Of a stretch of 64,000 nt of DNA, positions 6,239-35,323 are shown piece by piece. Every line of letters begins with the position of its first letter. The first letter of the stretch is position 1. The notes beneath the pieces were generated by a model, which was given only the letters and a program-made list of their open reading frames with translations, did no database searches and had not been told where the DNA came from. The stretch is taken from the sequence record NC_023719.1; one strand, 5' to 3'. The translations under genes were made by a program, and so were the position numbers.

Positions 6239-6266
6239 ACATTAATAGAGAAGAGGTTAGTAATAG

Positions 6267-16379: not shown

Positions 16380-16685
16380 GTGGTGAGATTGTTATGTATA
16401 AATTGTTTGCAAAATGCTACAAATAAACTTATAGCAGATGACATTATCATCCTTGAATATTTGAATAATCAGGGGGCAACAATTCCACAATGTACTATGT
16501 CAAGAGAAACTATAAAAGAAGAATTGAAGATGACAAATCATAAGTGTTATTCGTCAATTAGTCGTTTAGAATGTTTAGATATGATTGAACGTAAAGTTGG
16601 TACAAAATCAAGTAGATATTTTATTACAAAGAATGGTCAACATGTTTTGTATTTGGTGAATGATAAATTACAGGAGGTTGAATAA
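16380..16685 (+). CDS. Winged helix-turn-helix protein (TubR-like by position)
   Basis: MSRETIKEELKMT..CYSSISRLECLDMIER...YFITKNG wHTH pattern; abuts the tubulin gene. Confidence 0.65.
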   Translation: MVRLLCINCLQNATNKLIADDIIILEYLNNQGATIPQCTMSRETIKEELKMTNHKCYSSISRLECLDMIERKVGTKSSRYFITKNGQHVLYLVNDKLQEVE

Positions 16686-17816
16686 ATGGCTGGTACTAAA
16701 ATTGGTTTTCTTTGTTTTGGTGAAGGCGGTTCAAATGTTGGAGAGTATGCTGCTCAAAAAGGTTTTCCAGTAGTTGCAGTCAATAGCGCTAAAATAGATT
16801 TAGAAAAAATAAAAATAATTCCAAAAGATTGTAGGATTCACTTGGATGGCTGGGAAGGTGCTGGCAGAAATAGAGATGTAGGTAGGGAAGCAGTTCTATC
16901 TCACGCAGAAACAATCTTTGAAAAGATAAAAGATAAATTTAAAGATTGTGACATGGTGTTTTCAGTAGCTTCAACAGCTGGCGGTACAGGTTCAGGATCT
17001 TTAGCGGTTGGTATCGAACTTCTTTCAGAAATAAATAGTAAAGTTGGAGCGATAACTATTTTGCCAGACAAAAATGAAAGCCCAAAAGCTCATATGAATT
17101 CTTTAGAATGTTTCTCTGAGTTAAGCCAATACGAACAATTGAATAGTACGTTTATCATTGATAATGAAAAAGCAAATCAAGTATTTAAAGGCAAAGACAA
17201 AATTCAAATTTATCAATTATCTAATAATCAATTGATTGACAATTTAGCGGAAATATGCTCACTAACCGATCAACACGCTTTAGTTTCAAATTTTGATAAA
17301 AATGATCTACTTGAAATACTAAGTGAACGAGGAACCACTATAATTAGCAAGATAACAATACCAACAGAAGAATTGAAAGATGAAGTAGAAATTGTTAATG
17401 CAATTAGAAAATCTTGGGAAACTGTTTGTTCTTCTGACATTGGTGATGGGCAAATAGTAAAAGCTGGTGTATTTGGTAAAATACCAAAAGAATTAACTTC
17501 AATGATAGATTCAAGAAAAGTTTTTGAAGAAATTGGAATGCCATATGATATAATTGAATCTTACTATTTGAATACTGAACACTCTAATCATTGTATTTTC
17601 TATACTATTCTTTCTGGATTATCCTACCCAATTGAAAGATTGAAACAAATAGAAAGTGAAGTACAGATGATTGAACAAGAATTGATTAATAGAGTAGAAG
17701 TTTCTAGGACCCAAGTTTTTTCAACTAATAATTGGAACTCTAAGTTTAAACGACCTGAACAAAAACAAAATGTTAAAACATCGTTAAGTGATAGATTAAC
17801 AAGATTTACTAAGTAA
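16686..17816 (+). CDS. Tubulin/FtsZ-family GTPase (TubZ/PhuZ-like)
   Basis: FGEGGSNVG, GAGRNRDVG, AGGTGSG tubulin signature, IIDNEK and NFDKND T7-loop-like motif. Confidence 0.9.
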   Translation: MAGTKIGFLCFGEGGSNVGEYAAQKGFPVVAVNSAKIDLEKIKIIPKDCRIHLDGWEGAGRNRDVGREAVLSHAETIFEKIKDKFKDCDMVFSVASTAGGTGSGSLAVGIELLSEINSKVGAITILPDKNESPKAHMNSLECFSELSQYEQLNSTFIIDNEKANQVFKGKDKIQIYQLSNNQLIDNLAEICSLTDQHALVSNFDKNDLLEILSERGTTIISKITIPTEELKDEVEIVNAIRKSWETVCSSDIGDGQIVKAGVFGKIPKELTSMIDSRKVFEEIGMPYDIIESYYLNTEHSNHCIFYTILSGLSYPIERLKQIESEVQMIEQELINRVEVSRTQVFSTNNWNSKFKRPEQKQNVKTSLSDRLTRFTK

Positions 17817-17879: not shown

Positions 17880-18977
17880 TTGAAAAAAATCTACTTTTTT
17901 AAAGATGGGCATAAAGATATGCATAATTACTTGGGTAAAAAAGGCGCAAACCTATGCGAAATGTATAATATGGATTTGCCAGTACCAAATGGATTTATTA
18001 TACCCACATACTTAAATAGAGAAACAAAAGAATTAAGAAGAGAAATAGAAAATGCAATTGAAAAACTTGGAGGTAGGTTAGGAGAAGATTTATTTGTTTC
18101 AGTACGTTCAAGTGCTCCCACCTCAATGCCAGGAATGATGGATAGTTTTTTGAATATAAGTAATTATGATGACTTATTTAATTCTATAGAGCTAGTGGTT
18201 AATTCATGGAACAATAAAAGAGCTGTTACTTATAGGGAAAATAATGGTATCTCTGAAGGAGTGGGTACAGCTATAGTAATACAAAAAATGATCTTTGGAA
18301 ATAAAGACGAGAATTCTGGTTCTGGAGTTGTTTTTAGCAGAAATCCTAATAATGGAGAAGAAGGACTAGTCGGGGAGATATTGTTTAATTCTTTTGGTGA
18401 GGAATTAGTGCTTGGTAAAAAGACACCACTTTCAATTACTATATTAAAAGAAAAAATGCCCAACGTTTATACATTATTGGAAAATATATCAAAAAAGCTT
18501 GAAACTCATTTTTCATCTATGCAAGAAATAGAATTCACTATTGAAGAAAAAGAGTTATATGTATTGCAGACAAGAGAAGTAAAAAAGAAAAACAAAATAG
18601 TTAAGTTTAAAATAAAAGAAAAACAAAAAAATCCAATAACAATAGGTATAGCATCTTCTTATGGAGCGGCTACAGGGTTAGTTGTTTTTGATTCAAAGAA
18701 AGCAGTAGAATTAAAATCAAAAGGTAAAAACGTTATTTTAGTAAGACTTGAGACTAGTCCCGATGACATTGAGGGAATAATCGCTTGCGATGGCATTGTA
18801 ACTTTACAGGGTGGAGCAACTTCTCATGCAGCTGTTGTTGCTAGAAGTATGAATAAGCCATGTATTTGTGGCTGTCAATACTTAGATGTAAATGAATTAG
18901 AATGGATAACAATTGAAGGTCAAACTGGTAAAGTTTTTCTCGGTGAGTACGATTTAGAAATAGATGATAGTCTATAA
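17880..18977 (+). CDS. Truncated pyruvate phosphate dikinase-like protein (ATP-grasp plus phospho-His domain only)
   Basis: LGKKGANL..PVPNGF, VSVRSSAPTSMPGMMD, EFTIE..LQTR and GGATSHAAVVAR; ends without the C-terminal PEP/pyruvate barrel. Confidence 0.85.
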   Translation: MKKIYFFKDGHKDMHNYLGKKGANLCEMYNMDLPVPNGFIIPTYLNRETKELRREIENAIEKLGGRLGEDLFVSVRSSAPTSMPGMMDSFLNISNYDDLFNSIELVVNSWNNKRAVTYRENNGISEGVGTAIVIQKMIFGNKDENSGSGVVFSRNPNNGEEGLVGEILFNSFGEELVLGKKTPLSITILKEKMPNVYTLLENISKKLETHFSSMQEIEFTIEEKELYVLQTREVKKKNKIVKFKIKEKQKNPITIGIASSYGAATGLVVFDSKKAVELKSKGKNVILVRLETSPDDIEGIIACDGIVTLQGGATSHAAVVARSMNKPCICGCQYLDVNELEWITIEGQTGKVFLGEYDLEIDDSL

Positions 18978-20666: not shown

Positions 20667-21236
20667 ATGAAACAACTATCACTAGGAAAGAAAATAGCAG
20701 TTGGTGTAGGTGCTATATTAGTATTTTTCATAATCGTTGCAGCAATTGGTTCTACTACTTTATGGAGTCAGCGTGGAAAGGTAGTAAAATTAGAAAACAA
20801 GATTGAAGCACGATATAACTTCAATAAATCAGATTACGATAAAATGTGGAAGACGTTTGTTGAAACTGCTAAAGTTACAGAATTACAAGCTGAGCAATTT
20901 AAAGATGTTTATACTGAATTAATTTCTGGACGATATGAAGACACAGATCTATTGTTTAAAATGGTTCAAGAATCAAACCCACAATTGGGAACTGAAGTAT
21001 ATACTAATTTGCAAAGACAAATCGCTGCAGATAGATCAACTTTTAACAATAACCAAAAAGCAATTCTCGACATTATTAATCAATACAATAATTACATTGA
21101 ACACGATGCAATTATTATAGCATTTATTACAAACCGCAAACCTATCGATAGTAGCAAGTATATTATCACTTCAGAAAGAACAGAAAAAGCATTTGAATCA
21201 GGCAAAGATGAAGTTATTGATTTGCAAAGCAAGTAA
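20667..21236 (+). CDS. LemA-like membrane-anchored protein
   Basis: N-terminal TM helix then LFKMVQESNPQL..YTNLQRQI...INQYNNYI, matching the LemA helical pattern. Confidence 0.55.
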   Translation: MKQLSLGKKIAVGVGAILVFFIIVAAIGSTTLWSQRGKVVKLENKIEARYNFNKSDYDKMWKTFVETAKVTELQAEQFKDVYTELISGRYEDTDLLFKMVQESNPQLGTEVYTNLQRQIAADRSTFNNNQKAILDIINQYNNYIEHDAIIIAFITNRKPIDSSKYIITSERTEKAFESGKDEVIDLQSK

Positions 21237-21468: not shown

Positions 21469-22626
21469 ATGTTTTGGATTCCATTACTTATTCTAGGGAT
21501 ATTCATTATAGCTCTAGAAATTATCTTTACGCATAATTGGTTAAGGGCAATATTGATAATTGTAATAACAGCTTTTTTATCTGCTGCTACAATTGGGATT
21601 GATTATACTATTCAAACTACAGATACAGAAGTTTGGTCTGGGAGCGTTATAGAGTGGAGTCACGATGAAGAGTGGGATGAATGGCATCCACCAGTTACAA
21701 CGTGTACAACTGATTCAAATGGAAAACAAAATTGTACAACAACTCCAGGATATTGGGAACACCACTATGCTGAAAATCACATAAAAACTTCTGATAAAGG
21801 ATGGATTTATGTTGATAAGTCTCCAGATGGAAAACGATTTGATGACAATTGGCCAAATGATAGTTCAGTGCTAAAGAAATATTGGCCAGAAGGTACGCCT
21901 ACTGCATCTAGACATACTTACACGAATAAAGTAAATGCATCTTACAGTATCTACAAACATAAAGATGTTGATTTAGAAAAGTTTCCTGACTTACCTAACT
22001 ATCCAGACAAAGTAAGAGATAAAATGTTTATTGATAGAATAATCGGTAGTGTTCCAAATAAGGAGAAAGCAAGTGTATTGTTATCTCACCACAATACAAG
22101 ATTAAATAAACAAGTACCAGATCCAGAAAGAGAAAACAAAACTCGTTCTTGGAAACAAGTAAATATGATTTTTGTTAATGTTGGTGAAAATAAGTCTGAA
22201 GATTATGGTTTCGCTTTACAAGACAGTTGGGAAGGCGGAAATAAGAACGATTTCGTTGTATCTTTCAGTATGAACTCTGATGGAACTCTAAATTGGGTTT
22301 ATCCTTTTAGTTGGTCTGAAGTGGAAATACTAAAGTTAGAAGTAAGAGATTACATGATGGATCTTAAGAAAATTAATGACTTTGTTCCTGTAGTTGAAAA
22401 GGTTTCAACAATGGTTGAAGAAAAGTTTGAAAGAAAAGAGTTTGCTGATTTTGATTACTTACAAATTGATCCAAGCAATGGTGTTATTGTTCTAATTTGG
22501 GTATTTAGTATTTTAGCTATTATTGTAAATGCTTTTCTAATCTTTAAAGAAAAGCAAGATCAAAGCAATAGACGTAATACTGACAGACTTTATAATCCGC
22601 ATAGGTACTATAATCCAAGAAAATAG
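21469..22626 (+). CDS. Membrane protein with a large extracellular domain (TPM-like C-terminal part possible)
   Basis: Two N-terminal and one C-terminal TM helices; CTT..NCTT hairpin; WEGGNKNDFVVSF motif. Confidence 0.65.
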   Translation: MFWIPLLILGIFIIALEIIFTHNWLRAILIIVITAFLSAATIGIDYTIQTTDTEVWSGSVIEWSHDEEWDEWHPPVTTCTTDSNGKQNCTTTPGYWEHHYAENHIKTSDKGWIYVDKSPDGKRFDDNWPNDSSVLKKYWPEGTPTASRHTYTNKVNASYSIYKHKDVDLEKFPDLPNYPDKVRDKMFIDRIIGSVPNKEKASVLLSHHNTRLNKQVPDPERENKTRSWKQVNMIFVNVGENKSEDYGFALQDSWEGGNKNDFVVSFSMNSDGTLNWVYPFSWSEVEILKLEVRDYMMDLKKINDFVPVVEKVSTMVEEKFERKEFADFDYLQIDPSNGVIVLIWVFSILAIIVNAFLIFKEKQDQSNRRNTDRLYNPHRYYNPRK

Positions 22627-23026: not shown

Positions 23027-23060
23027 AAAAAAACCTCTTAGAAAAACTAAGAGGTTTTTT
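23027..23060. terminator. Bidirectional intrinsic terminator between convergent genes
   Basis: A7-CCTCTTAG/CTAAGAGG-T6 with A- and T-runs on both sides. Confidence 0.85.
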
Positions 23061-23883
23061 AAATTAGATTTTCAAATGTTGTAAAGTGACATTTTAAATC
23101 TGAAGAATGTTTATCTATGAACTTAGAATAGTAATTATTTAGTTTGCTAAGTCTCTTTCTGTCGTTTAAGATGAAAATTATTGGTATAGTTACAGGAGCT
23201 TCGAATGGTTGCCAATCGTGACACTTGAAGTCAGAGCTATTAAAAAAATAATTATGATAAGCATCTATCTTCTTGTTGAGTACATCTTGATTTTCCGTAG
23301 ATAAGTCAATTTCAAAAAATGCATAATTGTCGTTTTCATTGTTAAGCCAATATGAAAAACAATCTGGTCTAATTTCGTACTCTTTTGATCCTACAGAATA
23401 CTTTAGTTTTATTTCTTGTTTCCAATCAAGTACTTCATATTTACTAGCTAACCCAGAAAATACCTCACTTACAGCAACAGTATGTCTCCATTTTTGGTTT
23501 AATTTTTTAATAGGTCTGAATAGTTTTATATCTAATAGTTTTGATCCAGGTCTTGTTAGTACATAATGATATTCCGAAGAGCCTTCCCCTATGGATAATC
23601 TTGGAGAAAATCTATCTACACACCCTAATGAGAATAATTTTTTCATAGTTTTTAAAGTTGATTTATCTGGTGAGTTACTATCTGGATAAAATATCTTAGC
23701 TATTTGAGAAGTAGTAACTATTTTGTTCATGTTGATCATTTTGAGTATTTTGATATCTTTGTCATTAAGCCTAAGTTTAAGTTCGTTTATATAGTGAGCA
23801 TTAGACTTTTTAACTGCTTCTTCGTGTAAATCTCTTAGCTTTCTATTCCTCTCCATTAATAGACAAACATCAGACGTAATCAT
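23059..23883 (-). CDS. Replication-relaxation family protein (putative relaxase)
   Basis: N-terminal wHTH (VTTSQIAKIFY), HTVAVSEV, IRPDCF, FFEIDLSTE and KIDAY motifs; the only convincing minus-strand gene. Confidence 0.85.
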   Translation of the reverse strand: MITSDVCLLMERNRKLRDLHEEAVKKSNAHYINELKLRLNDKDIKILKMINMNKIVTTSQIAKIFYPDSNSPDKSTLKTMKKLFSLGCVDRFSPRLSIGEGSSEYHYVLTRPGSKLLDIKLFRPIKKLNQKWRHTVAVSEVFSGLASKYEVLDWKQEIKLKYSVGSKEYEIRPDCFSYWLNNENDNYAFFEIDLSTENQDVLNKKIDAYHNYFFNSSDFKCHDWQPFEAPVTIPIIFILNDRKRLSKLNNYYSKFIDKHSSDLKCHFTTFENLI

Positions 23884-23934
23884 AAATAACCTCCTTTTAT
23901 TATATAGATATTCTAATTAATCAAAAATGATACC

Positions 23935-24065
23935 AGAAATTGGTTAATTTCTATGGTTAATTTCTTTTGATATTAACTGTGATGTGTCTCCAACTATAAA
24001 CAGTTGATGGATTTTTAAGGCGTGACCGTGCAAATCCTTCCTATCTCATTTTCAATGAGATGGAA
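23935..24065. promoter_or_regulatory. Cluster of inverted and direct repeats upstream of the relaxase (candidate oriT or operator)
   Basis: IR 23935-23941/23946-23952; 12-bp direct repeat TGGTTAATTTCT at 23941 and 23954; IR 24009-24014/24032-24037; IR 24043-24050/24054-24061. Confidence 0.4.
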
Positions 24066-24195
24066 CCTTGAGGAGGTTGGTGATAAAAAAAATGAAAAAT
24101 TTCTCAACGAAAAACTTTTTATTTTTTTGTGTCTCTTTTTTCGTCGTGGTGAATATAATGAAAATATAACAAAGAAAAAAAGATGGTGATAAATT

Positions 24196-24378
24196 TTGTT
24201 AGATAAAATAGAAGATTTAACTTTAGAATTTCTATTTGTTATTACTGATTTTGTTTATAAGATAGTAATTAACATAATAGAAAATTATATTGTTACAAGT
24301 GATGTCTGGCCAAAGTTGATTTTTGTAGGTATTATTTTCTGGATGTTTAAGAAGAAAAGAGTGGTGAGGAAAAAATAG
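24196..24378 (+). CDS. Small membrane protein
   Basis: 60 aa, TM helix followed by basic KKKRVVRKK tail. Confidence 0.5.
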   Translation: MLDKIEDLTLEFLFVITDFVYKIVINIIENYIVTSDVWPKLIFVGIIFWMFKKKRVVRKK

Positions 24379-24492
24379 ATAATTTCCTTATTATATAGGA
24401 AGGAAAAATAAATTTCTAATTCTTTGTAACATTTGATATTATTGTGAATATATTGATAATATAAGGTGGAAAATAAAAGGAGGAAACATAAC

Positions 24493-24951
24493 ATGGCTGA
24501 GTATTCGTTTGCTGATAGTAAATATGAGTCATTGGCTCAAGATTTAATTGATGCAGACCCAATTGATTTAGGTCATATCGATGTTAGTGCAATTGCTTTT
24601 CTGAATAAAGAAGAGAAAAATCCAAAGTGGCCTTTTAGAATAATACCAATAAGAGAACCACTAACTATGTTAACTAAGTTTGAGTATTACGTTGAAATAT
24701 GCGAATCACTATTAGAAAATGCAACTAAAGAACATATCGAATTACATATCTATAAAATTCTAAGACAAATTGATAAAGAGAGTGGAAGAATCATACATCC
24801 AAATGTTATTGAGTTTAGCGACATAATAGATTTGTTCGGTTATGACTGGCAAGAAAAGAAAATGTTACCTTCTATTATAGATCAATTAGATGCAAAGACA
24901 GTTGCAAATACTTTGGTAGGTAACACTAGTGGACCGCCTAGCGTAATTTAA
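24493..24951 (+). CDS. Phage metallopeptidase-like domain lacking HExxH, paralogue B
   Basis: LGHIDVSAI...FEYYVEI...HIYKILRQI...HPNVIEFSDIIDLFG; ATG 24493 behind GGAGG. Confidence 0.5.
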   Translation: MAEYSFADSKYESLAQDLIDADPIDLGHIDVSAIAFLNKEEKNPKWPFRIIPIREPLTMLTKFEYYVEICESLLENATKEHIELHIYKILRQIDKESGRIIHPNVIEFSDIIDLFGYDWQEKKMLPSIIDQLDAKTVANTLVGNTSGPPSVI

Positions 24952-24970
24952 AATAAAGGAGAGAAGGTAA

Positions 24971-25435
24971 ATGAAAAAACATTACGAAGTAGTCGGGACT
25001 ATTGCGGAGTTAGATCTTAGGGAGTTAATAACTGAAAAAGAAAATAGCTTCGACGTTAATAAAGAAAAATTAAAGTTTATAGTTTCTGCAGCACTTTCAA
25101 CTCTAATATTTTCATTAGTTTTTCAGGATCCATCTTTAGCAGCTAATGGTGAAATGATACAAACTGCTTCTTCCAATTTTAAAACTCCTACACAGTTAAA
25201 TCACATACTGGAATTTGTTAGTTGGATAATCGATTTATTGAAATACATTTTATCGGGAATTGCAGGTTTAATTTGTACATTCGCTGGTTATAAGTGGGCT
25301 ACATCTTTAGAAGGTAATGGCCAAGAAGCTGCTAAGAAAATTCTAAAGAATGCATTTGTAGGTGGCGTAATAGTTTGGACAGGTTCTTCAATAGCTGGAT
25401 TCTTTGTGGATAAAATGAATGAAATATTAGGGTAG
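24971..25435 (+). CDS. TrbC/VirB2-like pilin precursor
   Basis: Signal-like segment ending PSLAA, then two TM helices split by GYKW..EAAKKILKNAFVG. Confidence 0.6.
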   Translation: MKKHYEVVGTIAELDLRELITEKENSFDVNKEKLKFIVSAALSTLIFSLVFQDPSLAANGEMIQTASSNFKTPTQLNHILEFVSWIIDLLKYILSGIAGLICTFAGYKWATSLEGNGQEAAKKILKNAFVGGVIVWTGSSIAGFFVDKMNEILG

Positions 25436-25449
25436 TTTGGAGGGAGAAA

Positions 25450-25587
25450 ATGAGAGACCCATATAGTAAGATATTTGTTTATACAGTCGCAGGATTTTGC
25501 GGCGTTGCTGGTTTTATCATAACATATATTGCTATTGGTTATCTATTTAAGCCGGCGGAAACTTGGATTGAAAATAAAATGAGATAA
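25450..25587 (+). CDS. Small single-TM protein (45 aa) in the conjugation module
   Basis: GGAGGGAG RBS; MRDPYSKIFVYTVAGFCGVAGFIITYIAIGYLF...; manual translation. Confidence 0.55.
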   Translation: MRDPYSKIFVYTVAGFCGVAGFIITYIAIGYLFKPAETWIENKMR

Positions 25588-25621
25588 AAAATAAAAATTG
25601 ATAAAATAAGGGGGAAATTTA

Positions 25622-25771
25622 ATGTTTACTACTATTAGTGCAGTTGTTGGGACTGTTTTTCAATTTTATGTTGCCTCTAGAGTTTGCGTAGGTATTTTCA
25701 AAAATGTAAAAAACAAGTTAGAGAGTAATCAAGTTGAAAGTGAATCTCTAGACAGTAAGAAGGTGATTTAA
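25622..25771 (+). CDS. Small hydrophobic protein (49 aa) in the conjugation module
   Basis: AGGGGG RBS; stop abuts the start of the VirB6-like gene; manual translation. Confidence 0.5.
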   Translation: MFTTISAVVGTVFQFYVASRVCVGIFKNVKNKLESNQVESESLDSKKVI

Positions 25772-26731
25772 GTGGATTGGAGCTTAGGGATAACGGAATC
25801 TATTAAAAAAGAAGTCGGTGAAAGTTGGGAATTAATAAAAGAGAATATTGGAGATTTCTTCCTATATTTATCACAACAATTACAAGAAGGAGCAAATAGT
25901 TTTTTAGCAGAAATGCTAGATTTCGTACTCTATACTCCTTTAGTAGCTGATAATGAAATCATTTTATCTATTTGGGCGACAGTTAGAATTATTTCATTTG
26001 CACTCATTGGTGTAATGTTCGTTTGGGAAGGATTTAAGAAAGTTATTTCAACCGACAATATTATAAGACATGTGGAGTTTAAAGAAATGTTTGTAAGGAT
26101 GGTTTACGGAATAGTATTAGCTGTTTTTAGCTTAGACATTATTGATTTGATGATTAACTTTAACAATGTTTTAATCGATACAGTGAAAAGTTCTTTCCCA
26201 ATGACATTAGAATCTAAGTTAAATATAAATGGAGTATTCAGCTTCCTTATGGTATTAGCTTTAGTAATAGTTCAAGTTGTATTAGGAATAAAACTCGTCT
26301 TACAGTACTGGATGCGTATAGCAGAGATATGGCTCATGGCTGTATTAGGTCCTCTGGTATACGTACTATGGATAAACCCTGGCTCGAAATTAAGTGGAGT
26401 TTTATCGCAGTGGGTAAGCAGGCTTACAACTACAATATTTACTACATTCATATGGGCTTTAATTTTAGCAATTTATTCTGGTATGGTGAGTATGATAGCT
26501 TCTGCTGGCATGTTAGCTGGTTTCCCTACTCTAGGTCCAATTGCAGGAATTTGTTTATCAATAGCCATGTTGCTAATTATGATTGAAACACCAGCATTCT
26601 TAAGGAGTTTTATGGACAACCAACCTAATGCATTGCATTTAGTTAAGAAAGTTTATACCAACGTTAAATCAAGTACGCCTATGGGGTTTGCTAATAAAGC
26701 TGCTGGATGGATACTACCTAGTAAAACGTAA
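25772..26731 (+). CDS. VirB6/TrbL-like polytopic membrane protein
   Basis: Multiple TM helices with RIAEIWLMAVLGPL..VLWINP and QWVSRL, typical of Gram-positive VirB6-like proteins; gene context. Confidence 0.7.
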   Translation: MDWSLGITESIKKEVGESWELIKENIGDFFLYLSQQLQEGANSFLAEMLDFVLYTPLVADNEIILSIWATVRIISFALIGVMFVWEGFKKVISTDNIIRHVEFKEMFVRMVYGIVLAVFSLDIIDLMINFNNVLIDTVKSSFPMTLESKLNINGVFSFLMVLALVIVQVVLGIKLVLQYWMRIAEIWLMAVLGPLVYVLWINPGSKLSGVLSQWVSRLTTTIFTTFIWALILAIYSGMVSMIASAGMLAGFPTLGPIAGICLSIAMLLIMIETPAFLRSFMDNQPNALHLVKKVYTNVKSSTPMGFANKAAGWILPSKT

Positions 26732-26835
26732 TTTATTTAAATTACGTTTTTTTATTTTTTTAAATTATTTACCATATTTTAGGTCATTTTTCATCGTTAG
26801 TGAATATAATAATTATATAAGGAGGAGGAAATAAT

Positions 26836-27213
26836 ATGATAGAGAAAGAACCATTATGTGCTATACCAAGAAATTTAAATGAGCCAGATACTATTATCCA
26901 CTATCCTGTAAAGTTAAATTGGAAACAAATTAGTTATATTTGCGTAGGTGTAGCGGGAGCATATTTTGCTTTTCAAACTGGGTTACCTATTGAATATAAA
27001 ACTGCTTTAATGGCTGGTAGCGTTGGAACTTCATTAGTTACTAGTTTAATAAAATATGAAGATTCTACTATTGATGAATTGGTAATTGATAGTTTGCACT
27101 ATGCTCAGAAGAAAAATATCTATAGACAACTAGAGAAACGAGGTGCAATGAATGTCAAATTCAACTCTTATGAAGAAAAAATCACCGGAGATTATGCCTT
27201 TTCAGAGTTCTAG
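26836..27213 (+). CDS. PrgI-like (VirB3-analogue) membrane protein
   Basis: IPRNLNEPD..KLNWKQISYI plus two TM helices, directly before the VirB4-like gene. Confidence 0.7.
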   Translation: MIEKEPLCAIPRNLNEPDTIIHYPVKLNWKQISYICVGVAGAYFAFQTGLPIEYKTALMAGSVGTSLVTSLIKYEDSTIDELVIDSLHYAQKKNIYRQLEKRGAMNVKFNSYEEKITGDYAFSEF

Positions 27214-28843
27214 TCTCCGCAAAGTATTAAAGGTTTCATCAGTCAATTTAGGGTTTAAATCCTACAATGATAAACTTGCTATTGTTGAAAATTTCGGTAG
27301 ATTTTTAAACTCTTTAACTCATCCTATACAAATAGTTAGTGATACAAAGTTGATAAATCCAGATGAATGGCTATTAAAAATGCCAGATCAAGATTATTAT
27401 GAATTCTTAAAAGACTTAGTAAACTCTAGTAATGTTTCAGAGAAAATATTTTACATAGCTTATACTGCGCAAGATGAGTCAGAATTAAAGATAATAACAG
27501 ATGCTTTAAGGAGTGGAATTAAAAGGTGTCGTCTATTGGCAGAAGAAGTTGAACCCGAAATTTCACAAAGCATACCAGTGCTTAAACCAGGACATGTTAA
27601 AGTTGGTGATTGGTATAATCATACTTTGATAGTAAAGAATTGGCCACATAGCTGCGTATCGGGTTGGTTAGAAAACCTGTACAATTTAGACAAAAACATA
27701 ACTTTATCAATGTTTATAGAGCCACAAAATAAACAAGATTCTATTAAATACATTAGCAAGAGACTAGCAAGATTGCAATCTAACTCAATTATTAAAGATA
27801 AAGAAAATAAAACTAATGGCGAAGAAGATGAAAGTATTGCAACTGGTCTAAATATGAGAGAAGAACTAATGAGAAATGAAGGTAATTTCTTTTTCGTTAG
27901 TTATTACATTACTGTTAAAGCAAAAAGTTTAGAACAATTAAAAAGAGATACAAAATTTGTAAAAACTATTTTAAACGGAATGATGATTGAAACGTCTAAA
28001 GCTACTTTAAGACATGATGATGGATATAGATGTTCACTCCCACTTATGCAAAATAACCTTCGTTCTAAAGCTGCGTATACATTCACAACTACCCCACTAA
28101 AGAGATTTTTCCCTTTTATGTCTGCTAATATAGTTGATAAAGGCGGAATAATGATTGGTAGCAATTTATTAAATAATTCATTAATTTTCTTAGATCACTT
28201 TAGTTATTCAACAGCGAGTATGGTTGTTATAGGAAAGACTGGTTCTGGTAAATCATTTACTGTAAAAGCTCAAATAGATAAGCTGGTAAAACAGGGAGTG
28301 GAAGTAACTGTTTTAGATATAGAAAAAGAATTTGATAGGATGCAAAAGCATAAGAATTTAATAGTAAAACACTTTGGGACCAAGGTTGAACAGTACAAAC
28401 AATTCTTATTTGACTATTGGGAAGAAGTAAATAATGGACCTAAAAAACCAAGATTTTTAGTAATTGATGAGTTTTGGAGCTATAAAAAAGATCCGGAAAT
28501 AGCTGATTTATTGCAAAAAATGGCTAAGTTAGGAAGAAAGAGATGGTTAGGTATTTGTCCGATTACTCAAGAAGTAAATGATATGTTAAGTGATGAATTC
28601 TCTAAGAGTCTAATAAATAATTCCAGTATAAAAATTATTTTACAAATTGATCCTAATCAAAGAAAATTAGTACAAGAAACTTTTGGTTTGACAGATTCTG
28701 AAGTATCTTTCTTAATTGGTGCATCTGAGGGTGAAGGAATATTGTTCGCAGGTACAAATCATGTGCAATTTAAAACAATTGTATCAGATAAACAATATGC
28801 GCAAATAACGACAAAGCCACAGGAGTTATATCAAGTTAGTTAA
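27152..28843 (+). CDS. virB4: VirB4-like conjugation ATPase (compact)
   Basis: Walker A IGKTGSGKS, Walker B FLVIDEFW, K..RKRW..ITQ, INNSSIKIIL and FGLTDSEVSFL..GEG motifs. Confidence 0.8.
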   Translation: MSNSTLMKKKSPEIMPFQSSSLRKVLKVSSVNLGFKSYNDKLAIVENFGRFLNSLTHPIQIVSDTKLINPDEWLLKMPDQDYYEFLKDLVNSSNVSEKIFYIAYTAQDESELKIITDALRSGIKRCRLLAEEVEPEISQSIPVLKPGHVKVGDWYNHTLIVKNWPHSCVSGWLENLYNLDKNITLSMFIEPQNKQDSIKYISKRLARLQSNSIIKDKENKTNGEEDESIATGLNMREELMRNEGNFFFVSYYITVKAKSLEQLKRDTKFVKTILNGMMIETSKATLRHDDGYRCSLPLMQNNLRSKAAYTFTTTPLKRFFPFMSANIVDKGGIMIGSNLLNNSLIFLDHFSYSTASMVVIGKTGSGKSFTVKAQIDKLVKQGVEVTVLDIEKEFDRMQKHKNLIVKHFGTKVEQYKQFLFDYWEEVNNGPKKPRFLVIDEFWSYKKDPEIADLLQKMAKLGRKRWLGICPITQEVNDMLSDEFSKSLINNSSIKIILQIDPNQRKLVQETFGLTDSEVSFLIGASEGEGILFAGTNHVQFKTIVSDKQYAQITTKPQELYQVS

Positions 28844-28858
28844 GGAAGGAGTGTAATT

Positions 28859-31336
28859 GTGTTTAGTAAAAAAATTGAATATCCTAAAGATAGTATTGTC
28901 ATTAAATTGGAGAATGATATTGAATCTACTCATGATGATAGATCTAGTGAGGTTGAGAGTTTTTGGTCTAGTATTCATGGGTTACAAGATAAAAAAGAGC
29001 GACCAACATTTTCTTTTGAGATATTAAGTGACAAAAAAGGAGCAGCTTTTTATCTAGCTATACCTAAAAGATTTCAAAGTATAATTGGTAAAAAGTTAAA
29101 TGCAGTTTATCCATATATAGAAATTAAAGAAGTTGCTGATCCAGTTAAAGAGTTTAGTCCTAAGATAGATGAACACGTTTATAGTTGTGAGTTAAAGTTA
29201 ACAAATCATGAATCTTTTAATTTAAAGACATCGGGTTTAAGTAAGACATTTTTAAATAATTTATTAAATACTATGAACCATTTTAATGAGGATGATTCAT
29301 CATTAGTGCAAATTTTAATAAAACCGTTACCAGAATCTTGGAATCATAAAGCTCAAAGAAATTCAACTAGAGCAAGGGCAAAAAGTTTTCATAGTTCAAA
29401 TCCAATTGTAAAAGGATTAATGTTGATAGTAGATTTACTAGTAAGCTCGGTAATGTTAGTACTTGATTCAACAGTTACTAATGGACAACTTAAAAAATCA
29501 TTTAAAGAAGTATCCGCAACAACTACTAAAACAGAAAAAGATGATAAATTTTCAAAACCCTGTTTTAATGTTTCAGTTAGGATTGCATCTAAATCAAAAG
29601 ATGCAATTGTAGCAGAACAAACAGCTAAGAGTATATCAACAGTGTTCCAAAATTTAGATAGTGAAAACAAACTAAGACCTAAAAAAATAACTTTTAAATC
29701 TATAGAAGAAAGGTTTGAAGAACCAAAGACATTTAAAAATAGCGCGTTAAATGTACAAGAAATGTCCCAGTTTATACATTTACCTGGGAAAGGTGTATCC
29801 GCTGATAATGTCGGTAAAGGAAATGTAAAAATGCCATATGACAAAAATGTTCCATCTAAAGGAATAGTTTTTGGATATAGCCCGCAAAAAGATAATAAAC
29901 CTGTTGCTTTCCCTATGAAAGTTATTTCTTTAGAAAAATACGACGAATTATATGACGAATATGAAAAGCTAATCGATAACTTATGTAAGCCTAGATTGGT
30001 TTTAGGTCAAATGGGTACTGGGAAAAGTGAGTGGGTAGTTAATTATACTCTTAGTTTAATTAATGCGGGACTATCTGTAATTATTGTAGATCCTAAAAAT
30101 GATACTCAAGAAAGGTTAATACAATCAATATCTGAAGATAAAATAGATAAAATTGACTACTTAAATTTAGGAGATTTAATATTCCCTCCTGGTATGAATC
30201 TGCTGAGACGTAGAAACCCTGGCGACCCAACTGAAATATCATTAATTGTACAATCTTTAATAAGCTTCTTTAAGAAAGAATTTGGACGTTCGTGGGGCTT
30301 TGCGATGCAGCAATTAATTATGATGACTGGTAATGCTATCTTATTAGATGAAGTCGCAACTCTATACGAATTCCAATTAATGTTAACTAATAAAGAGTAT
30401 AGAGCAAAAATGATAGACAAGATAGAAGCGAAAATAGCTGAAAACTCTGGTGGTAAAGCAATGTTAAAAGAGTTACTACAATTCTGGAAACAGTTTCATA
30501 GTTGGCCAGAAAAAAATCAAATGGATCGCATTAGTTCCACAATGAATAAGATAGGCGTATTTATGAGTAATAGAATTGTAAGAGCTATAGTGTCTCAAGA
30601 AGAAAGTTATGATTTTAGAAAAGCTGGAGATAATGGAAGAATAACTATTGTTAATATTCCTGATGGAGAATTGCAAGATGAAAATAGAGAACTATTAGCA
30701 TCATTTATAAATAAAGCTATTTGGTTAGATTTCCGTTCGCGAGCATCTATGCCTATAAGAAAACGTTATCCAACTATGTGGTTAATTGAAGAAGCACACA
30801 TGGTTATGGATACTGAATTTATACCTGTCTTAACTCAATCTCGTGGATATCGTTTAGGCGTAACAGTATTAACTCAAGGCTTAACGAACTTTGATAATAA
30901 AGGTATGAGTGAACTTAAAGATTTAATTTTAACTAACTGCAAAAATAAAGTAGTTTTCCGTGTTGGGCCACAAGATGCTCGCGCATTAGCGGAAGAATTC
31001 TCTCCACTTACTTCATATGATTTAATGAATTGTCCAGATTATCATTTCTATTCTAAGATACTACTTGAAGATGGTAAAGTTTCAGATGTGTTCTTTGCGA
31101 ATTCACCACCAGTAGCACCTGAATTAAGAGATTATCAGAAATACAAAGAAGCAAGTAGATCTGGTAAATATACAATAGATGAAATAGAGGATAGACTAGA
31201 TTCAAGACATAACTTAGAAGATACATCTTCTATAATGAATTTAGGTTTATCTATGGAAGAGGAAAAAACAATTGTTAAAGAAGAAAAACCTAAAAAGAGA
31301 AGGGCTAAGCCAGGTCTAGAGTTTTTAGATAATTAA
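28859..31336 (+). CDS. virD4: VirD4/TraD-like type IV coupling protein
   Basis: Walker A LGQMGTGKS, IIVDPKND, Walker B LIEEAH, QSRGYRLGVTVLTQ and NCKNKVVFRVGPQDA. Confidence 0.8.
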   Translation: MFSKKIEYPKDSIVIKLENDIESTHDDRSSEVESFWSSIHGLQDKKERPTFSFEILSDKKGAAFYLAIPKRFQSIIGKKLNAVYPYIEIKEVADPVKEFSPKIDEHVYSCELKLTNHESFNLKTSGLSKTFLNNLLNTMNHFNEDDSSLVQILIKPLPESWNHKAQRNSTRARAKSFHSSNPIVKGLMLIVDLLVSSVMLVLDSTVTNGQLKKSFKEVSATTTKTEKDDKFSKPCFNVSVRIASKSKDAIVAEQTAKSISTVFQNLDSENKLRPKKITFKSIEERFEEPKTFKNSALNVQEMSQFIHLPGKGVSADNVGKGNVKMPYDKNVPSKGIVFGYSPQKDNKPVAFPMKVISLEKYDELYDEYEKLIDNLCKPRLVLGQMGTGKSEWVVNYTLSLINAGLSVIIVDPKNDTQERLIQSISEDKIDKIDYLNLGDLIFPPGMNLLRRRNPGDPTEISLIVQSLISFFKKEFGRSWGFAMQQLIMMTGNAILLDEVATLYEFQLMLTNKEYRAKMIDKIEAKIAENSGGKAMLKELLQFWKQFHSWPEKNQMDRISSTMNKIGVFMSNRIVRAIVSQEESYDFRKAGDNGRITIVNIPDGELQDENRELLASFINKAIWLDFRSRASMPIRKRYPTMWLIEEAHMVMDTEFIPVLTQSRGYRLGVTVLTQGLTNFDNKGMSELKDLILTNCKNKVVFRVGPQDARALAEEFSPLTSYDLMNCPDYHFYSKILLEDGKVSDVFFANSPPVAPELRDYQKYKEASRSGKYTIDEIEDRLDSRHNLEDTSSIMNLGLSMEEEKTIVKEEKPKKRRAKPGLEFLDN

Positions 31337-31360
31337 AAAGGGACGAAAGTTCCTTTTTTT
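31336..31360 (+). terminator. Intrinsic terminator ending the conjugation module
   Basis: AAAAGGGAC-GAAA-GTTCCTTTT (with a G-U pair) plus T-run. Confidence 0.75.
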
Positions 31361-31421: not shown

Positions 31422-31838
31422 ATGGTTGAAGAGATACTAATACAACAGTTGTATAGCGCTAGCTTACTTAGAAAAGAAATGTATAGTATTGAAGATGTAT
31501 TGTCAAAGCGCGTAGAATCATACTTTAAAAGTAAAGATTCTAAAGTAGATTTTGATGGTGATTTGATAAAAATGAATTCTCAAAGATATGAAGTTTTTGA
31601 TTTAAAAGGTATAATTTGCTGTAGTTGTGGATTAGAAGGTAGATTTTTTGCAAAAGAAAGAGGTAATGAGAGCTACCCTTATCATTTTAATTTATATGCT
31701 GTTAATGATAAAGGCGAGGAAGTACTTATGACTAAAGATCACATTGTACCAGTTTCAAAAGGTGGTAAAAATCACATTAGTAATTATCAAACCATGTGTA
31801 TTATTTGTAATGAAAAAAAGGGAAATCAAGAGGTTTAA
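31422..31838 (+). CDS. HNH endonuclease
   Basis: CCSCG...TKDHIVPVSKGGKNHISNYQTMCIICNEKKG. Confidence 0.85.
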   Translation: MVEEILIQQLYSASLLRKEMYSIEDVLSKRVESYFKSKDSKVDFDGDLIKMNSQRYEVFDLKGIICCSCGLEGRFFAKERGNESYPYHFNLYAVNDKGEEVLMTKDHIVPVSKGGKNHISNYQTMCIICNEKKGNQEV

Positions 31839-32823: not shown

Positions 32824-34083
32824 ATGTCAAAAAAATTAAATTGGTTAGATAAATTCGCTCAAGAGCAAGCTGAAAAACAAACAATGAAGAAGGTAGCATC
32901 TACTAAAAAAGTTGCTAATCAAATTATCGTAAGTCCAGAAGATGTACCAAGTGCTGAAGAAGGATCTACAATTGAGTTTAATGGTGAACAATTTAAAGTC
33001 GTAGACGCTAATTTCTCTGATGAAGTTGGCCCAGGTGTAGTATTAGAAAGAGCTGCTGCTTACGAAAATTTACAAGGTAATCCAATGGACGTTTCTATGG
33101 GTACACAAAGTGCTGGTATGGTACCAGCTTCTAATAATGGTCAACAATATCACTATGATTTAAATAACAATACTCAACAAACTTATAGCATTGAAGAAGA
33201 TGCTCAATATGGTATGTCTTCTGCACCAGCTACTGAACAACAAATTGCAGGGGAAAACGCAGTAGATCGTACAAATGTTCCAGGTAGATACACTCCATCG
33301 CCTGATTTAAGTTCTGCTAATGGTGTGGCTACTCCAGGTATGCCTACTGCTCCAGCGCCAGTTTCAGTTGATGCGCCAGCTGCAGCTCCAACAACTGAAC
33401 CAGCTCCAGCTGCTGAAACTCCAGTGGGAGATACTACAACTACTGAAGAACTAACTGTTGATGAAACTACTGAAACTCCAACTGAAGACAAAACTGAAGA
33501 AAAAGAAAACAAAATTCTTTCTAAAGTTAAAAGTTCTCTTCCAAAAAAAGAGAAAAAAGCAGTTTCTAAAAGAACTGCAATGAATACTTCTATTATCAAC
33601 TTAGCTTCTGATGTTTCTGATGCTATTGTTGCTGAAACTGAAGATGTATTAGAAGATGCTGAAGAAACAGTTAAGCAATTAGTTCCTTCACATTTAGCTA
33701 CAAAAGCTCTTCAACTATTAGAAGCGGAATTAGAAGAAGAAGGTATCGAAGCTTTATTTGATAAAGCTGATTCTTTAAGTAAAACTGCTGGTGAAGAAGA
33801 AGATTGTACTGAAGAAGAAATGAAAGAAATTGTTAAAAAAGTTGCTGAAGCTGTAGTGGAAGATATGGAAAAAACTCTTGCTGAAGCTGATGAAACAATG
33901 GATGAAGAAAGAGAAACTTTAGCTGATGGTGAAGATCAATTTGAATTAGAAGCTAAATTAAAAGCTATGGTTGAACGCAAATTACATGCTAAAGGTATTT
34001 ATACTCGTTTCGCTCGTACAGCTAAAAAAGCTCCAAAGAAAACAATTGCTCAAAAAATTCGTGAAGCTCGTAAAAATCGCTAA
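32824..34083 (+). CDS. Acidic low-complexity protein, possible scaffold or internal head protein
   Basis: Pro/Ala/Thr linker, Glu-rich helices, recurrent K/R-x-A motifs; highly biased codon use. Confidence 0.55.
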   Translation: MSKKLNWLDKFAQEQAEKQTMKKVASTKKVANQIIVSPEDVPSAEEGSTIEFNGEQFKVVDANFSDEVGPGVVLERAAAYENLQGNPMDVSMGTQSAGMVPASNNGQQYHYDLNNNTQQTYSIEEDAQYGMSSAPATEQQIAGENAVDRTNVPGRYTPSPDLSSANGVATPGMPTAPAPVSVDAPAAAPTTEPAPAAETPVGDTTTTEELTVDETTETPTEDKTEEKENKILSKVKSSLPKKEKKAVSKRTAMNTSIINLASDVSDAIVAETEDVLEDAEETVKQLVPSHLATKALQLLEAELEEEGIEALFDKADSLSKTAGEEEDCTEEEMKEIVKKVAEAVVEDMEKTLAEADETMDEERETLADGEDQFELEAKLKAMVERKLHAKGIYTRFARTAKKAPKKTIAQKIREARKNR

Positions 34084-34174
34084 TTAAAATAAAAACTTTT
34101 ATAATTTGTATTTTATAAGCAGATACTATAATTTAGTATCTGCTTTTTATTTGCTATTAAGGAGGCGGTTTAAA

Positions 34175-35323
34175 TTGTCGAAGATTTATCATAGAGGTCA
34201 AGATTTATTTTTATATGTGCAATTTAAAGATGAACAAAATAAACCATTAATTGAAATAGAAAGTCCAGTATTTACTATTAGTTATGAGAAAAATGGCGAC
34301 TACTATACTCTATTTGAGGAGCAAGAATTATTTCCGTTAGATCAATCACAAGGTGAATATTGTTTTAATATATCTTTGCCTGAAAATGCAGAGTACTCAA
34401 TATACGATATAGAATATTCTGCTAATACAGTGGACGGAAAAGTGGCGAGAGTGAATGAGAATTTCCATGTAATCCCTAAATCTGAAAAATACGCAGATGC
34501 AATAAAAGTTTATGGTTTTATTCACCAAACGAGAGTAGGTTATCCATTAATTAGTGCTATAGTTAAAATAAAGTTAGTAGATAATTCAAAAATTGTAGCA
34601 GAATCATATACTAACTTTGATGGTAGGTGGGAAGCATACTTATATCCAGGCGAATATGTTTTTGAATTTTGGAAATTCGGATTTAAAAGCGAAGAAATAG
34701 TAGCGCAAATTGGTGTTGAACATACTGAAATACAATTTGACAATGTTTCTTTAGAATCAGAAAATGAAATTAATACTGGCAATGGCATTTATACTATCTC
34801 AGATAATTTTGTTACTAGAGAAGGAACACCTTTAGAAGGTTTAACGGTTAAAGCGATAGATGTTCTAAAGATTGGTACGAGTAAAGAAGTTGCCGCGCAA
34901 GACATAACAAATAATAGTGGTGAATATAGAATATATTTAGACCCAGGTATCTATTTGCTTAAAGTAAATGGTAATTCACTATTAGAAGATTTTTCTCAAA
35001 CTTTCAGATTAAGAATAGAAGACAATGGGAAATTCACATTGGAGAATTTAACGCAAAATGTTGGAGTCCCAGCAGACGATCTAATGGTAGATCAAGGTAG
35101 TGGAAGTGTAACTATAGAAGATTATATAAAAGATACAAATGGAACTCCTATAGTTGATGTTCAAATTTGTGTATATAGAAAAAATGATATTAATACTTTA
35201 GTAGCGCAAGACTACACGGACCCAGCTGGAAAGTGGGCTGTGCATTTGGATCCTGATACTTATATATTTGAGTATTACCACCCAGAGTTCCATGAATTCC
35301 AAGAGGAAAAGCAAGTTAAGTAA
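34175..35323 (+). CDS. Virion structural protein with three transthyretin/CarboxypepD-like Ig repeats
   Basis: Repeats VAESYTNFDGRW..LYPGEY, AAQDITNNSGEY..LDPGIY and VAQDYTDPAGKW..LDPDTY. Confidence 0.65.
   Translation: MSKIYHRGQDLFLYVQFKDEQNKPLIEIESPVFTISYEKNGDYYTLFEEQELFPLDQSQGEYCFNISLPENAEYSIYDIEYSANTVDGKVARVNENFHVIPKSEKYADAIKVYGFIHQTRVGYPLISAIVKIKLVDNSKIVAESYTNFDGRWEAYLYPGEYVFEFWKFGFKSEEIVAQIGVEHTEIQFDNVSLESENEINTGNGIYTISDNFVTREGTPLEGLTVKAIDVLKIGTSKEVAAQDITNNSGEYRIYLDPGIYLLKVNGNSLLEDFSQTFRLRIEDNGKFTLENLTQNVGVPADDLMVDQGSGSVTIEDYIKDTNGTPIVDVQICVYRKNDINTLVAQDYTDPAGKWAVHLDPDTYIFEYYHPEFHEFQEEKQVK

Follow-up and report, generated by a model that had tools for sequence, protein, structure and literature searches.

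A type IV secretion-like gene module in the genome of phage G

We analysed a 64,000-nucleotide stretch of sequence record NC_023719.1 (the window), which belongs to Bacillus phage G (JN638751/NC_023719, Donellivirus gee, 497.5 kb), a giant phage of Bacillus/Lysinibacillus, and focused on a module resembling a type IV secretion system (T4SS) that extends from gp146 to gp156 (window positions 23027-31360, a region 100% identical to the phage G record; record position = window position + 62000). The original prediction for this DNA, made from the sequence alone, had placed between two terminators a divergent replication-relaxation gene and a co-oriented run of pilin-like, small transmembrane, VirB6-like, PrgI-like and VirB4-like genes, and had taken these for the core parts of Gram-positive (monoderm) conjugation systems. 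Both statements were confirmed by Pfam, NCBIfam and profile matches to the individual components; the genes belong to the phage genome, and terminator-like hairpins lie exactly at the two bounds. The features of the module are listed below (ORF, open reading frame; aa, amino acids).

23028-23060, both strands: left boundary, a bidirectional terminator-like hairpin of 14 pairs
23059-23883, minus strand: gp146, Replic_Relax (MOBC-type) relaxase-like protein, divergent from the other module genes (Pfam 4e-25, above the curated cut-off)
23884-24492, no strand: divergent control region, holding the next four features
23941-23966: tandem 13-mer
24022-24189: gp147, annotated small ORF, not conserved in relatives
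24196-24378: gp148, annotated small ORF, not conserved in relatives
24433-24460: sigma-70-like site
24493-24951, plus strand: gp149, PhageMetallopep-like cytoplasmic protein (Pfam 5.6e-5; no hydrophobic segment)
24971-25435, plus strand: gp150, VirB2/TrbC-like T4SS pilin-type membrane protein (T4SS_pilin 3.7e-6, 27.4 bits against a cut-off of 26.6; TrbC/VirB2 6e-4)
25450-25587, plus strand: gp151, 45-aa single-helix membrane protein (homologues in the related contig lineages L006, L008, L009 and L010)
25622-25771, plus strand: gp152, 49-aa single-helix membrane protein (same-position ORFs of 44-52 aa in relatives)
25772-26731, plus strand: gp153, TrbL/VirB6-like polytopic channel protein (TrbL_4 1.8e-11, 44.4 bits against a cut-off of 27)
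26836-27213, plus strand: gp154, PrgI/VirB3-like small membrane protein (3' end overlapping the start of the VirB4 gene)
27194-28843, plus strand: gp155, compact VirB4 ATPase of 549 aa (ORF open from 27152)
28859-31336, plus strand: gp156, coupling-protein-like ATPase of 825 aa (N-terminal alpha/beta domain, Pfam DUF8128; hydrophobic helix; P-loop domain with an all-helical insert)
31335-31358, plus strand: right boundary, a terminator-like hairpin immediately 3' of the gp156 stop codon

A comparable gene set has been described as the 'DNA translocation operon' of the lytic phage 0305phi8-36 (ORF200-207), and SPO1 has an operon resembling it (gp27.3-gp29.1) (Pathria et al. 2012, PMC3357382); we refer to these two phages throughout.

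The module encodes a VirB4 ATPase and a coupling-protein-like ATPase

gp155 matches the TraG-P-loop, AAA_10 and DUF87 families of Pfam, and reaches 2.6e-51 against the CD1110-family VirB4 of NCBIfam, where its 175 bits, below the equivalog cut-off of 325, mark it as a family member and not as an equivalog. A profile built from gp155 and six relatives retrieved 4ag5, a solved C-domain of VirB4 (5.8e-20), and TrwK (8e-8). The 26 close homologues of gp155 (41-80% identity; 413-575 aa save for one 328-aa fragment) are all found on metagenome contigs, some of them 117-558 kb in length; beyond these, identity does not exceed 33% over half the length, and the same limit applies to the closest non-phage VirB4. 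The VirB4-family ATPase with an intact P-loop that forms part of the definition of a conjugative T4SS is present here as gp155. Its GenBank annotation reads 'type IV secretory pathway protein'; separately, we observed that phrog_2666, the family to which gp155 belongs (E 5.9e-272), bears the label 'terminase large subunit' although the protein is a VirB4, so that automated phage annotation will mislabel its relatives.

For gp156, Pfam gave weak DUF87 and TraG-D_C matches only, the DUF8128 domain being taken from precomputed Pfam annotations. TraG-D_C recurs in 38/42 relatives (best 8e-6), a distant homologue (P0134) matches TrwB_AAD_bind, and profiles of 7 and of 42 sequences retrieved no sequence match below 1e-4 from the PDB. 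An AlphaFold model computed from 42 homologues (pLDDT 83) matched the folds of full-length TrwK/VirB4 (E 2e-15), the soluble domain of TrwB (E 7e-12, TM 0.60-0.66 on target), HerA and DotL, and in a viral fold library it resembled proteins of the Bacillus phages JL (E 1e-45), 0305phi8-36 and Slash. The 'VirD4-like' label of the original prediction thus holds only at the level of fold and superfamily, and not by Pfam or by sequence matches to solved structures; on the strength of the model we regard gp156 as coupling-protein-like, and not as a proven VirD4.

Homologues of gp156 were found by tblastn in 66 phage records, all but one weak case being phages of spore-forming Firmicutes, and SPO1 gp27.4 aligns at 8e-23 over 86% of the length. 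With 56-77% identity across six phage-G-like lineages, gp156 is the best-conserved gene of the module; a second clade of homologues shares 34-45% identity over the full length, and the hydrophobic helix at about residues 182-207, found in most members of the phage G subclade, is absent from this more distant clade. Walker A and B residues are invariant in both the gp155 and the gp156 families, in agreement with the intact motifs originally reported for both ATPase genes. The idea that the two are close paralogues was rejected, as hhalign found the P-loop region alone to be in common.

In the 2025 phage G paper (PMC12484599), gp155 and gp156 were named TraC- and TraD-like, were absent from the virion proteome, and had a phage function that was called unknown; words for relaxase-, pilin-, TrbL- and PrgI-like genes have zero occurrences in that paper. 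Their absence from the virion proteome indicates that both ATPases act inside the cell.

Channel-type membrane proteins are encoded beside virB4

In gp150, a signal-anchor helix is followed by an Ala-x-Ala site and then by two hydrophobic helices, and T4SS_pilin matches were obtained for 9/9 members of its family, SPO1 gp29.1 included. gp153 has six hydrophobic segments, shares 43-71% identity with its counterparts in relatives, is homologous to ORF203 of 0305phi8-36 (E 3e-7), and has 147 relatives among 1.84 billion representative proteins. Six of the nine gp154 family members match PrgI in Pfam (best 2.4e-5), phage G gp154 itself being without a Pfam match, and the family shares an invariant N-terminal motif followed by two moderately hydrophobic helices. 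Channel genes of the VirB6/TrbL and VirB3/PrgI types, which together with the neighbouring virB4 characterise a conjugative T4SS, are therefore represented by gp153 through its own match and by gp154 through that of its family.

A MOBC-class relaxase-like gene is transcribed divergently from the channel genes

The divergent gene, gp146, matches phrog_9381 at 4.5e-89 and combines a winged helix with a PD-(D/E)XK-type nuclease domain. The nuclease assignment rests on Pfam and the literature, which attributes this fold to PF13814 (PMC3424549), because the fold model of gp146 is only moderate and a search of that model against the PDB returned no match at E 0.001 or better. Homologues in six relatives share 37-59% identity and keep acidic residues and one lysine invariant, and gp146 is also homologous to SPO1 gp27.3 (2e-10) and to ORF200 of 0305phi8-36 (2e-7). 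In CONJscan terms PF13814 constitutes the MOBC class, which is partnered with VirD4-type coupling proteins (PMC5357655); by its family match, gp146 supplies the recognised MOB-class relaxase of a CONJscan-style definition. One relative, L008, carries two divergently arranged Replic_Relax genes (4465-5307 and 5587-6327) in place of one.

Within the control region between gp146 and gp149, the lack of conservation of gp147 and gp148 suggests that these two annotated ORFs may not be genes. gp149, a conserved module member that the original prediction had not listed, shares 42-72% identity in six relatives of the phage G subclade. It contains an HxExH stretch, and we considered it as a candidate for a missing wall hydrolase; this was rejected, as gp149 has no export signal and the metal-binding histidines vary among relatives.

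The module is conserved and syntenic in phage-G-like lineages

A synteny check across related phages, proposed with the original prediction, revealed the module in eight contig lineages of phage-G-like genomes, in the same order and in some cases on contigs of up to 558 kb. In six of these (L003, L004/L005, L006, L007, L008 and L009) gp146, gp149, gp150, gp153, gp154, gp155 and gp156 follow one another as in phage G, VirB4 identity is 49-75%, and the flanking phage genes (thymidine kinase, tubulin, gp158-160 and PhoH) are kept as well; one relative, a 191.6-kb contig, had been deposited as a 'Bacillales bacterium' metagenome-assembled genome. The two more distant lineages, L010 (110-kb contig) and L011 (73-kb contig, with a tail-sheath gene downstream), carry a reduced module in the order tubulin, pilin-like, (a tiny ORF), TrbL-like, PrgI-like, VirB4 and gp156-like. 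A scan of IMG/VR returned phage G itself only.

In pairwise comparisons of three genomes, the proportion of nonsynonymous differences (pN) was far below that of synonymous differences (pS) in every module gene, with ratios of the corresponding rates (dN/dS) of 0.07-0.45, most of them 0.1-0.3, at saturated synonymous sites. These comparisons establish, at the level of sequence evolution, that the module was passed down in the phage G lineage while purifying selection acted on it.

This conservation bears on whether the locus might be an assembly chimera, or an independent integrative and conjugative element (ICE) or plasmid fragment that was recently inserted. The bacterial ancestry of the module genes is all that speaks for such an origin. 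Five independent assemblies of phage G with long reads have been published, the same module occupies the same place in the eight related lineages, which are syntenic through both flanks, and the closest non-phage VirB4 is at most 33% identical. For GC content we obtained 0.307 (module) and 0.312 (window), with GC and strand skew like those of the flanks, and we found no integrase in or beside the module and no flanking direct repeats. Two of the objections raised with the original prediction, a chimeric assembly and an ICE with its own att sites, consequently fail: a chimera and a recent ICE are excluded by the synteny and conservation of the module in related lineages, and we give this origin practically no weight.

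Homing endonuclease genes (HNH, GIY-YIG) or unassigned inverted ORFs were also observed between module genes or at their edge (phage G 31422-31838; L008 7237-7956; L009 5408-6295 and 11390-11806), and the pilin-like ORF of L008 is truncated once, beside a homing endonuclease gene.

The reduced modules of L010 and L011, which have no relaxase-like gene at the locus, would fit a machine with no DNA substrate, a T4SS that delivers phage proteins to neighbouring cells for secretion, signalling or competition, or that hinders incoming plasmids or rival phages. Protein secretion is common among T4SS, and a pilin-sharing system of Patescibacteria is mostly devoid of relaxases (PMC12102498). Yet no effector-like gene is conserved in the module, and a relaxase-like gene is present in all six phage-G-subclade lineages, in SPO1, in 0305phi8-36, in the phage Thrax1 and on the metagenome contig L018, always with a coupling ATPase; we regard secretion as quite improbable.

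Exported wall hydrolases accompany the module in relatives

M23 peptidase genes were identified inside the modules of two relatives, between the relaxase-like gene and gp149 in L006 and between the TrbL-like and PrgI-like genes in L003. Both products match M23 at 1e-28 to 1e-30 and carry an N-terminal signal or anchor. In Thrax1, an M23 peptidase gene lies beside that of the coupling-like ATPase. Since exported hydrolases of the M23 (L003, L006, Thrax1) or CHAP (L018) type accompany the module, the machine would have to cross the cell wall. The original prediction had suggested that the missing hydrolase of phage G might be supplied by phage lysins, which is possible; the exported M23 peptidases inside relatives' modules are the better observation.

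The sole M23 match in the window (57921-58268) falls within an ORF of 2893 aa (50076-58757), of which this C-terminal part is 36-37% identical to the relatives' M23 peptidases. Judged from its sequence, the 2893-aa product is probably a virion-borne, wall-degrading tail protein.

A filament gene lies beside the module in every large phage examined

Two further genes, upstream of the module and outside it, concern a cytoskeletal partner.

16380-16685, plus strand: gp137, ORF of about 100 aa abutting the tubulin gene, candidate winged-helix adaptor (TubR-like)
16686-17816, plus strand: tubulin/FtsZ-like GTPase (Pfam Tubulin 4.5e-17; relatives 40-55% identical)

The link to a tubulin gene, already part of the original prediction, is strengthened by the relatives: the tubulin gene adjoins the relaxase-like gene in L003, L004, L007 and L008, directly or one small ORF away, and in L010 and L011 it lies directly upstream of the T4SS genes and is co-oriented with them. 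In phage G, tubulin is separated from the module by the gp139-gp145 block, some genes of which are not conserved in relatives. In phage G and its relatives, the ORFs at the position of gp137 gave weak winged-helix matches (TrmB, DUF4364, DUF3116, and S10_plectin in L010), nearly all below the Pfam cut-offs, S10_plectin in L010 alone passing.

In every large phage examined a filament gene accompanies the module, tubulin in phage-G-like genomes and an actin-like Alp/ParM gene in SPO1, 0305phi8-36 and Thrax1; Alp domains were confirmed in 0305phi8-36 ORF207 and SPO1 gp27.9. In Thrax1, a 167-kb temperate siphophage, ParM is followed by small proteins, an M23 peptidase, the coupling-like ATPase, Replic_Relax and a recombinase. 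As the filament gene has been replaced by that of an unrelated protein (tubulin versus actin-like), we argue for a functional tie between module and filament. SPO1 genomes have been reported to be trapped in spores, a context in which the ParM gene 27.9 is mentioned (PMC12991052).

Actin-like and tubulin partners are typical of plasmid partition, which raises the question of plasmid-like maintenance: filament, Replic_Relax protein and ATPase would position, nick and replicate, and anchor to the membrane a phage genome in a carrier or pseudolysogenic state, the channel genes serving as anchor only. Replic_Relax is named for plasmid replication and relaxation, and RefSeq labels a protein of this family 'replication initiation by nicking'. 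The temperate Thrax1 has the pair beside ParM, a tyrosine recombinase and a replication initiator; the Kirov paper takes Replic_Relax plus ParM as features of plasmid-prophages; and deletion of the operon in 0305phi8-36 caused no lytic defect (PMC3357382). Against this, VirB4, VirB6, VirB3, the pilin and the exported wall hydrolases have no role in partition and are nonetheless kept under selection, L010 and L011 retain channel and ATPases at a locus that has no relaxase-like gene, neither a carrier nor a lysogenic state of phage G has been observed, and there is no plasmid DNA match. We consider maintenance unlikely.

The original prediction had gone further, proposing a phage-plasmid with three ways of life: as virions, by conjugation and as a tubulin-partitioned plasmid. 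Genes of the conjugation type are indeed present and linked to a tubulin gene that has a small winged-helix partner. This part of the prediction is nevertheless not supported: lysogeny of phage G has never been observed in 50 years, its 'temperate' call stems from a software prediction and one transposase, no plasmid replicon and no integrase were found, the module region has no DNA match in 72,556 plasmids (PLSDB), and no convincing centromere-like repeats or repeat array were seen near the tubulin gene. A phage-plasmid of this kind is very improbable.

Position of the module and neighbouring genes

According to the 2025 phage G paper, terL (record position 1) maps to physical position 440572 of a genome that is linear, non-permuted and 499.9 kb long (PMC12484599). 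From this published position we calculated the physical left end to lie at roughly 59 kb of the record, some 3 kb ahead of the start of the window, and the module to lie about 26-34 kb from that end, with all genes from that end rightward. Such an arrangement would suit a machine that moves DNA inward, either pulling the long genome into the cell once its leading end is expressed or taking up outside DNA in the manner of ComB/Ced. DNA import is known for some T4SS, and gp155 has weak NCBIfam matches to CedD (1.4e-11) and CedB (2.2e-8). These matches are far below their cut-offs and far weaker than those to VirB4, and a relaxase is not expected in an importer. The near-end position is, moreover, not conserved: in 0305phi8-36 the related operon occupies 118-125 kb out of 219 kb, in SPO1 92-97 kb out of 132 kb; and the 0305phi8-36 deletion strain grows normally, so that the related operon is not needed for genome entry there. 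Inward movement is, in our judgement, improbable.

The original prediction had put virion genes 1 kb from the module, a distance that needs correction: the nearest annotated one, gp142 (20667-21236), ends about 1.8 kb away. Downstream, outside the machinery, lies one further gene:

31422-31838, plus strand: gp157, HNH homing endonuclease (Pfam HNH_5 2.3e-11), confined among the loci compared to phage G and L009

Just upstream of the module, gp144 (21469-22626; 385 aa, phrog_2087) has hydrophobic helices at both termini and was not found in related loci. gp139 (17880-18977, 365 aa), which sits between the tubulin gene and the module, combines a pyruvate-phosphate-dikinase nucleotide-binding domain (1.8e-46) with a PEP-utilising mobile domain (1.5e-21) and is absent from that position in relatives. 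gp159 and gp160 (32824-35323) follow the module in all related lineages, the gp159 homologue being represented by two ORFs in L010 and L011; gp160 contains CarboxypepD_reg/Ig-like repeats, and neither protein has an export signal. At 179-1668, close to the calculated physical left end, five successive ORFs of 92-102 aa may constitute a tandem small-gene family.

Discussion

Taken together, these comparisons establish that phage G carries a seemingly complete set of inner-membrane T4SS genes and, with it, a relaxase-like gene of the MOBC class; the set is conserved in a giant-phage lineage and linked to a filament gene, and its expressed products are not parts of the virion. We tentatively favour, at a little short of an even chance, an accessory function in which DNA is exported from the infected cytoplasm, coupled to the relaxase, into an adjoining cell compartment, be it a neighbouring or sister cell or a forespore. 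DNA is indicated as the substrate because a relaxase and a coupling-type ATPase occur together, PF13814 pairing with VirD4-type proteins (PMC5357655).

In such a mechanism, gp150, gp151, gp152, the VirB6-like gp153 and the VirB3-like gp154 would build a channel in the cytoplasmic membrane of the infected cell, on which gp155 would dock and which it would power. gp146 would bind phage DNA and nick it at a putative site, while gp156, held at the membrane by its hydrophobic helix, would take over the DNA-protein complex and pump the strand across this channel. Delivery of the DNA to the machine may be the task of the tubulin with its small winged-helix partner. The likeliest destination would be a neighbouring or sister cell, or the forespore in spore-forming hosts, and the module would provide an accessory route of spread or persistence without a virion. 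Such a route would suit phage G, since its 0.6-micrometre virions probably diffuse poorly; by analogy with 0305phi8-36, the module is probably dispensable for lytic growth in the laboratory.

Several observations weigh against DNA export. The module of phage G has no VirB8/TcpC-like scaffold, all of its conserved proteins being otherwise assigned save the cytoplasmic gp149, and it has no module-borne (stand-alone) wall hydrolase and no adhesin; the original prediction had likewise recognised neither a hydrolase nor a VirB8/TcpC-like gene, and we recognised none among the module proteins. gp156 is without the usual N-terminal two-helix membrane domain of VirD4 and passes no Pfam cut-off in our local library, and the gp146 model is of no more than moderate quality (pLDDT 69), with weak matches to nucleases (E > 0.02). 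Divergent regions were compared among seven loci and yielded no conserved inverted repeat or candidate transfer origin, only AT-rich, non-conserved repeat pairs, and as no inverted repeat is conserved among relatives we cannot name a transfer origin. L010 and L011 have neither the relaxase-like gene nor gp149 at the locus, from which it follows that DNA nicking may not be integral to the core machine. TP-84 and similar small phages keep only the ATPase and one membrane protein, so that the ATPase may have a function of its own. The Patescibacteria T4SS, which shares the pilin and mostly has no VirB8 and no relaxase, has been interpreted as serving non-conjugative roles (PMC12102498). In a lytic infection the time available for moving a genome of 500 kb is short, and transfer of DNA by such machinery has been demonstrated for no phage.

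If relaxase-coupled export is extended from phage G to a whole clade, giant Bacillales phages (with SPO1- and 0305phi8-36-like phages in reduced form) would pass their genome, without virions, through a filament-guided, relaxase-coupled T4SS to a neighbouring cell or developing spore; lytic viruses would then have a second way of transmission that needs no particle. We rate this broader proposal as rather unlikely.

Virion-free spread by DNA translocation is itself not a new idea, having been proposed in 2012 for the 0305phi8-36 operon, where particle-free propagation between cells in biofilms was speculated (PMC3357382). What is new is the identification in phage G of the whole set, with its relaxase-, pilin-, VirB6- and VirB3-like members; the conservation of the module across uncultured contigs of megaphage size; the M23 genes inside the modules of relatives; the swap of tubulin and actin-like partners; and a non-phage counterpart (L018) in the same order.

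If the module moves phage DNA, the border between viruses and conjugative elements blurs. A strictly lytic giant phage would then possess a route of transmission or persistence independent of receptors and of virion diffusion, which could help to explain how 0.6-micrometre virions persist in soil and biofilms. Regardless of transfer, the conserved module marks a megaphage lineage, and the recurrence of a filament gene, tubulin or actin-like, beside a coupling-type ATPase offers a hypothesis for phage cytoskeletal proteins outside nucleus-forming phages. Standard typing tools appear to miss the system, as with the PHROG label for VirB4 given above and with MOB-suite: gp156-type ATPases occur on 106 plasmids, including large plasmids of the Clostridium botulinum group and C. 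sporogenes, and 101/106 are typed as 'non-mobilizable' (as reported in PLSDB).

Comparison with known systems

With monoderm conjugation systems (MPF_FATA/FA; pCF10 Prg/Pcf and the Tn916/ICEBs1 family) the phage module shares a CD1110-like VirB4, PrgI-like and TrbL/VirB6-like proteins, a coupling-protein-like ATPase, a MOBC-class relaxase and, in the relatives of phage G, a wall hydrolase; PrgK of pCF10 also has a LytM/M23 domain. It differs in having no VirB8-like protein, no adhesin and no hydrolase of its own in phage G, a VirB4 shorter by about 200 residues, and a VirB2-like pilin that is absent from classical MPF_FATA systems. The coupling ATPase bears a DUF8128 N-domain where monoderm systems have two N-terminal membrane helices, and the carrier is a lytic virus.

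Like the T4SS of Patescibacteria (PMC12102498), the module has a T4SS_pilin-type VirB2 beside virB4 together with PrgI-like and VirB6-like genes, VirB8 usually being undetectable there. The Patescibacteria systems are chromosomal, often beside dnaA, usually without a relaxase and often with pilin arrays, whereas in the phage module there is a single pilin gene, along with a relaxase-like gene. Among the near non-phage relatives of gp155 is a Patescibacteria-like VirB4 (P0029, locus L019) from a chromosomal T4SS beside dnaA with pilin arrays. Archaeal Ced and bacterial ComB import systems likewise combine a VirB4/HerA-type ATPase with polytopic and small membrane proteins; these importers are without a relaxase, and CedB and CedD are matched far below cut-off only.

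The 2012 operon of 0305phi8-36 comprises a MobC-related relaxase (similar to CloDF13 MobC, HHpred 4.4e-22), a coupling ATPase that has no membrane domain, a homologue of VirB6 and a protein resembling MreB, and deletion of ORF200-207 caused no growth defect (PMC3357382). To this operon and that of SPO1 we add pilin-like genes, 0305phi8-36 ORF204 and SPO1 gp29.1, both of which match gp150. Common to the phage G module and the 0305phi8-36/SPO1 operon are a Replic_Relax gene, a coupling-type ATPase without a classical membrane domain, a pilin-like gene, tiny membrane ORFs, a filament gene in or beside the operon, spore-forming Bacillales hosts, and products that are not virion proteins; the VirB6-like gene is homologous between phage G (gp153) and 0305phi8-36. 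The phage G clade differs in its tubulin in place of an actin-like protein, in an inverted and upstream relaxase gene, in the addition of gp149 and in the hydrophobic helix gained by gp156. It also adds VirB4 and the PrgI/VirB3-like protein, neither of which was found in 0305phi8-36 or SPO1. On these sequence relationships, the phage G module represents the 'DNA translocation operon' in its most complete form, with VirB4 included.

The closest counterpart in gene order is L018, a 10.9-kb metagenome contig (1-10853, 50% GC) that encodes in succession a pilin, a protein like VirB6, one with two helices, VirB4, an exported hydrolase of the CHAP type, a coupling ATPase with DUF8128, and Replic_Relax; its VirB4 is among the nearest non-phage relatives of gp155 and has relatives of its own on contigs of up to 156 kb. 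It has the same parts as the phage module, in the phage order, with the CHAP hydrolase in place of M23. It is not a phage, has a different base composition, no filament gene and a VirB4 split into two ORFs, and its proteins are 20-31% identical to those of the phage module. Since the same gene order recurs on this unrelated contig, sequence comparison establishes that the phage module descends, as one unit, from a compact conjugation-type system.

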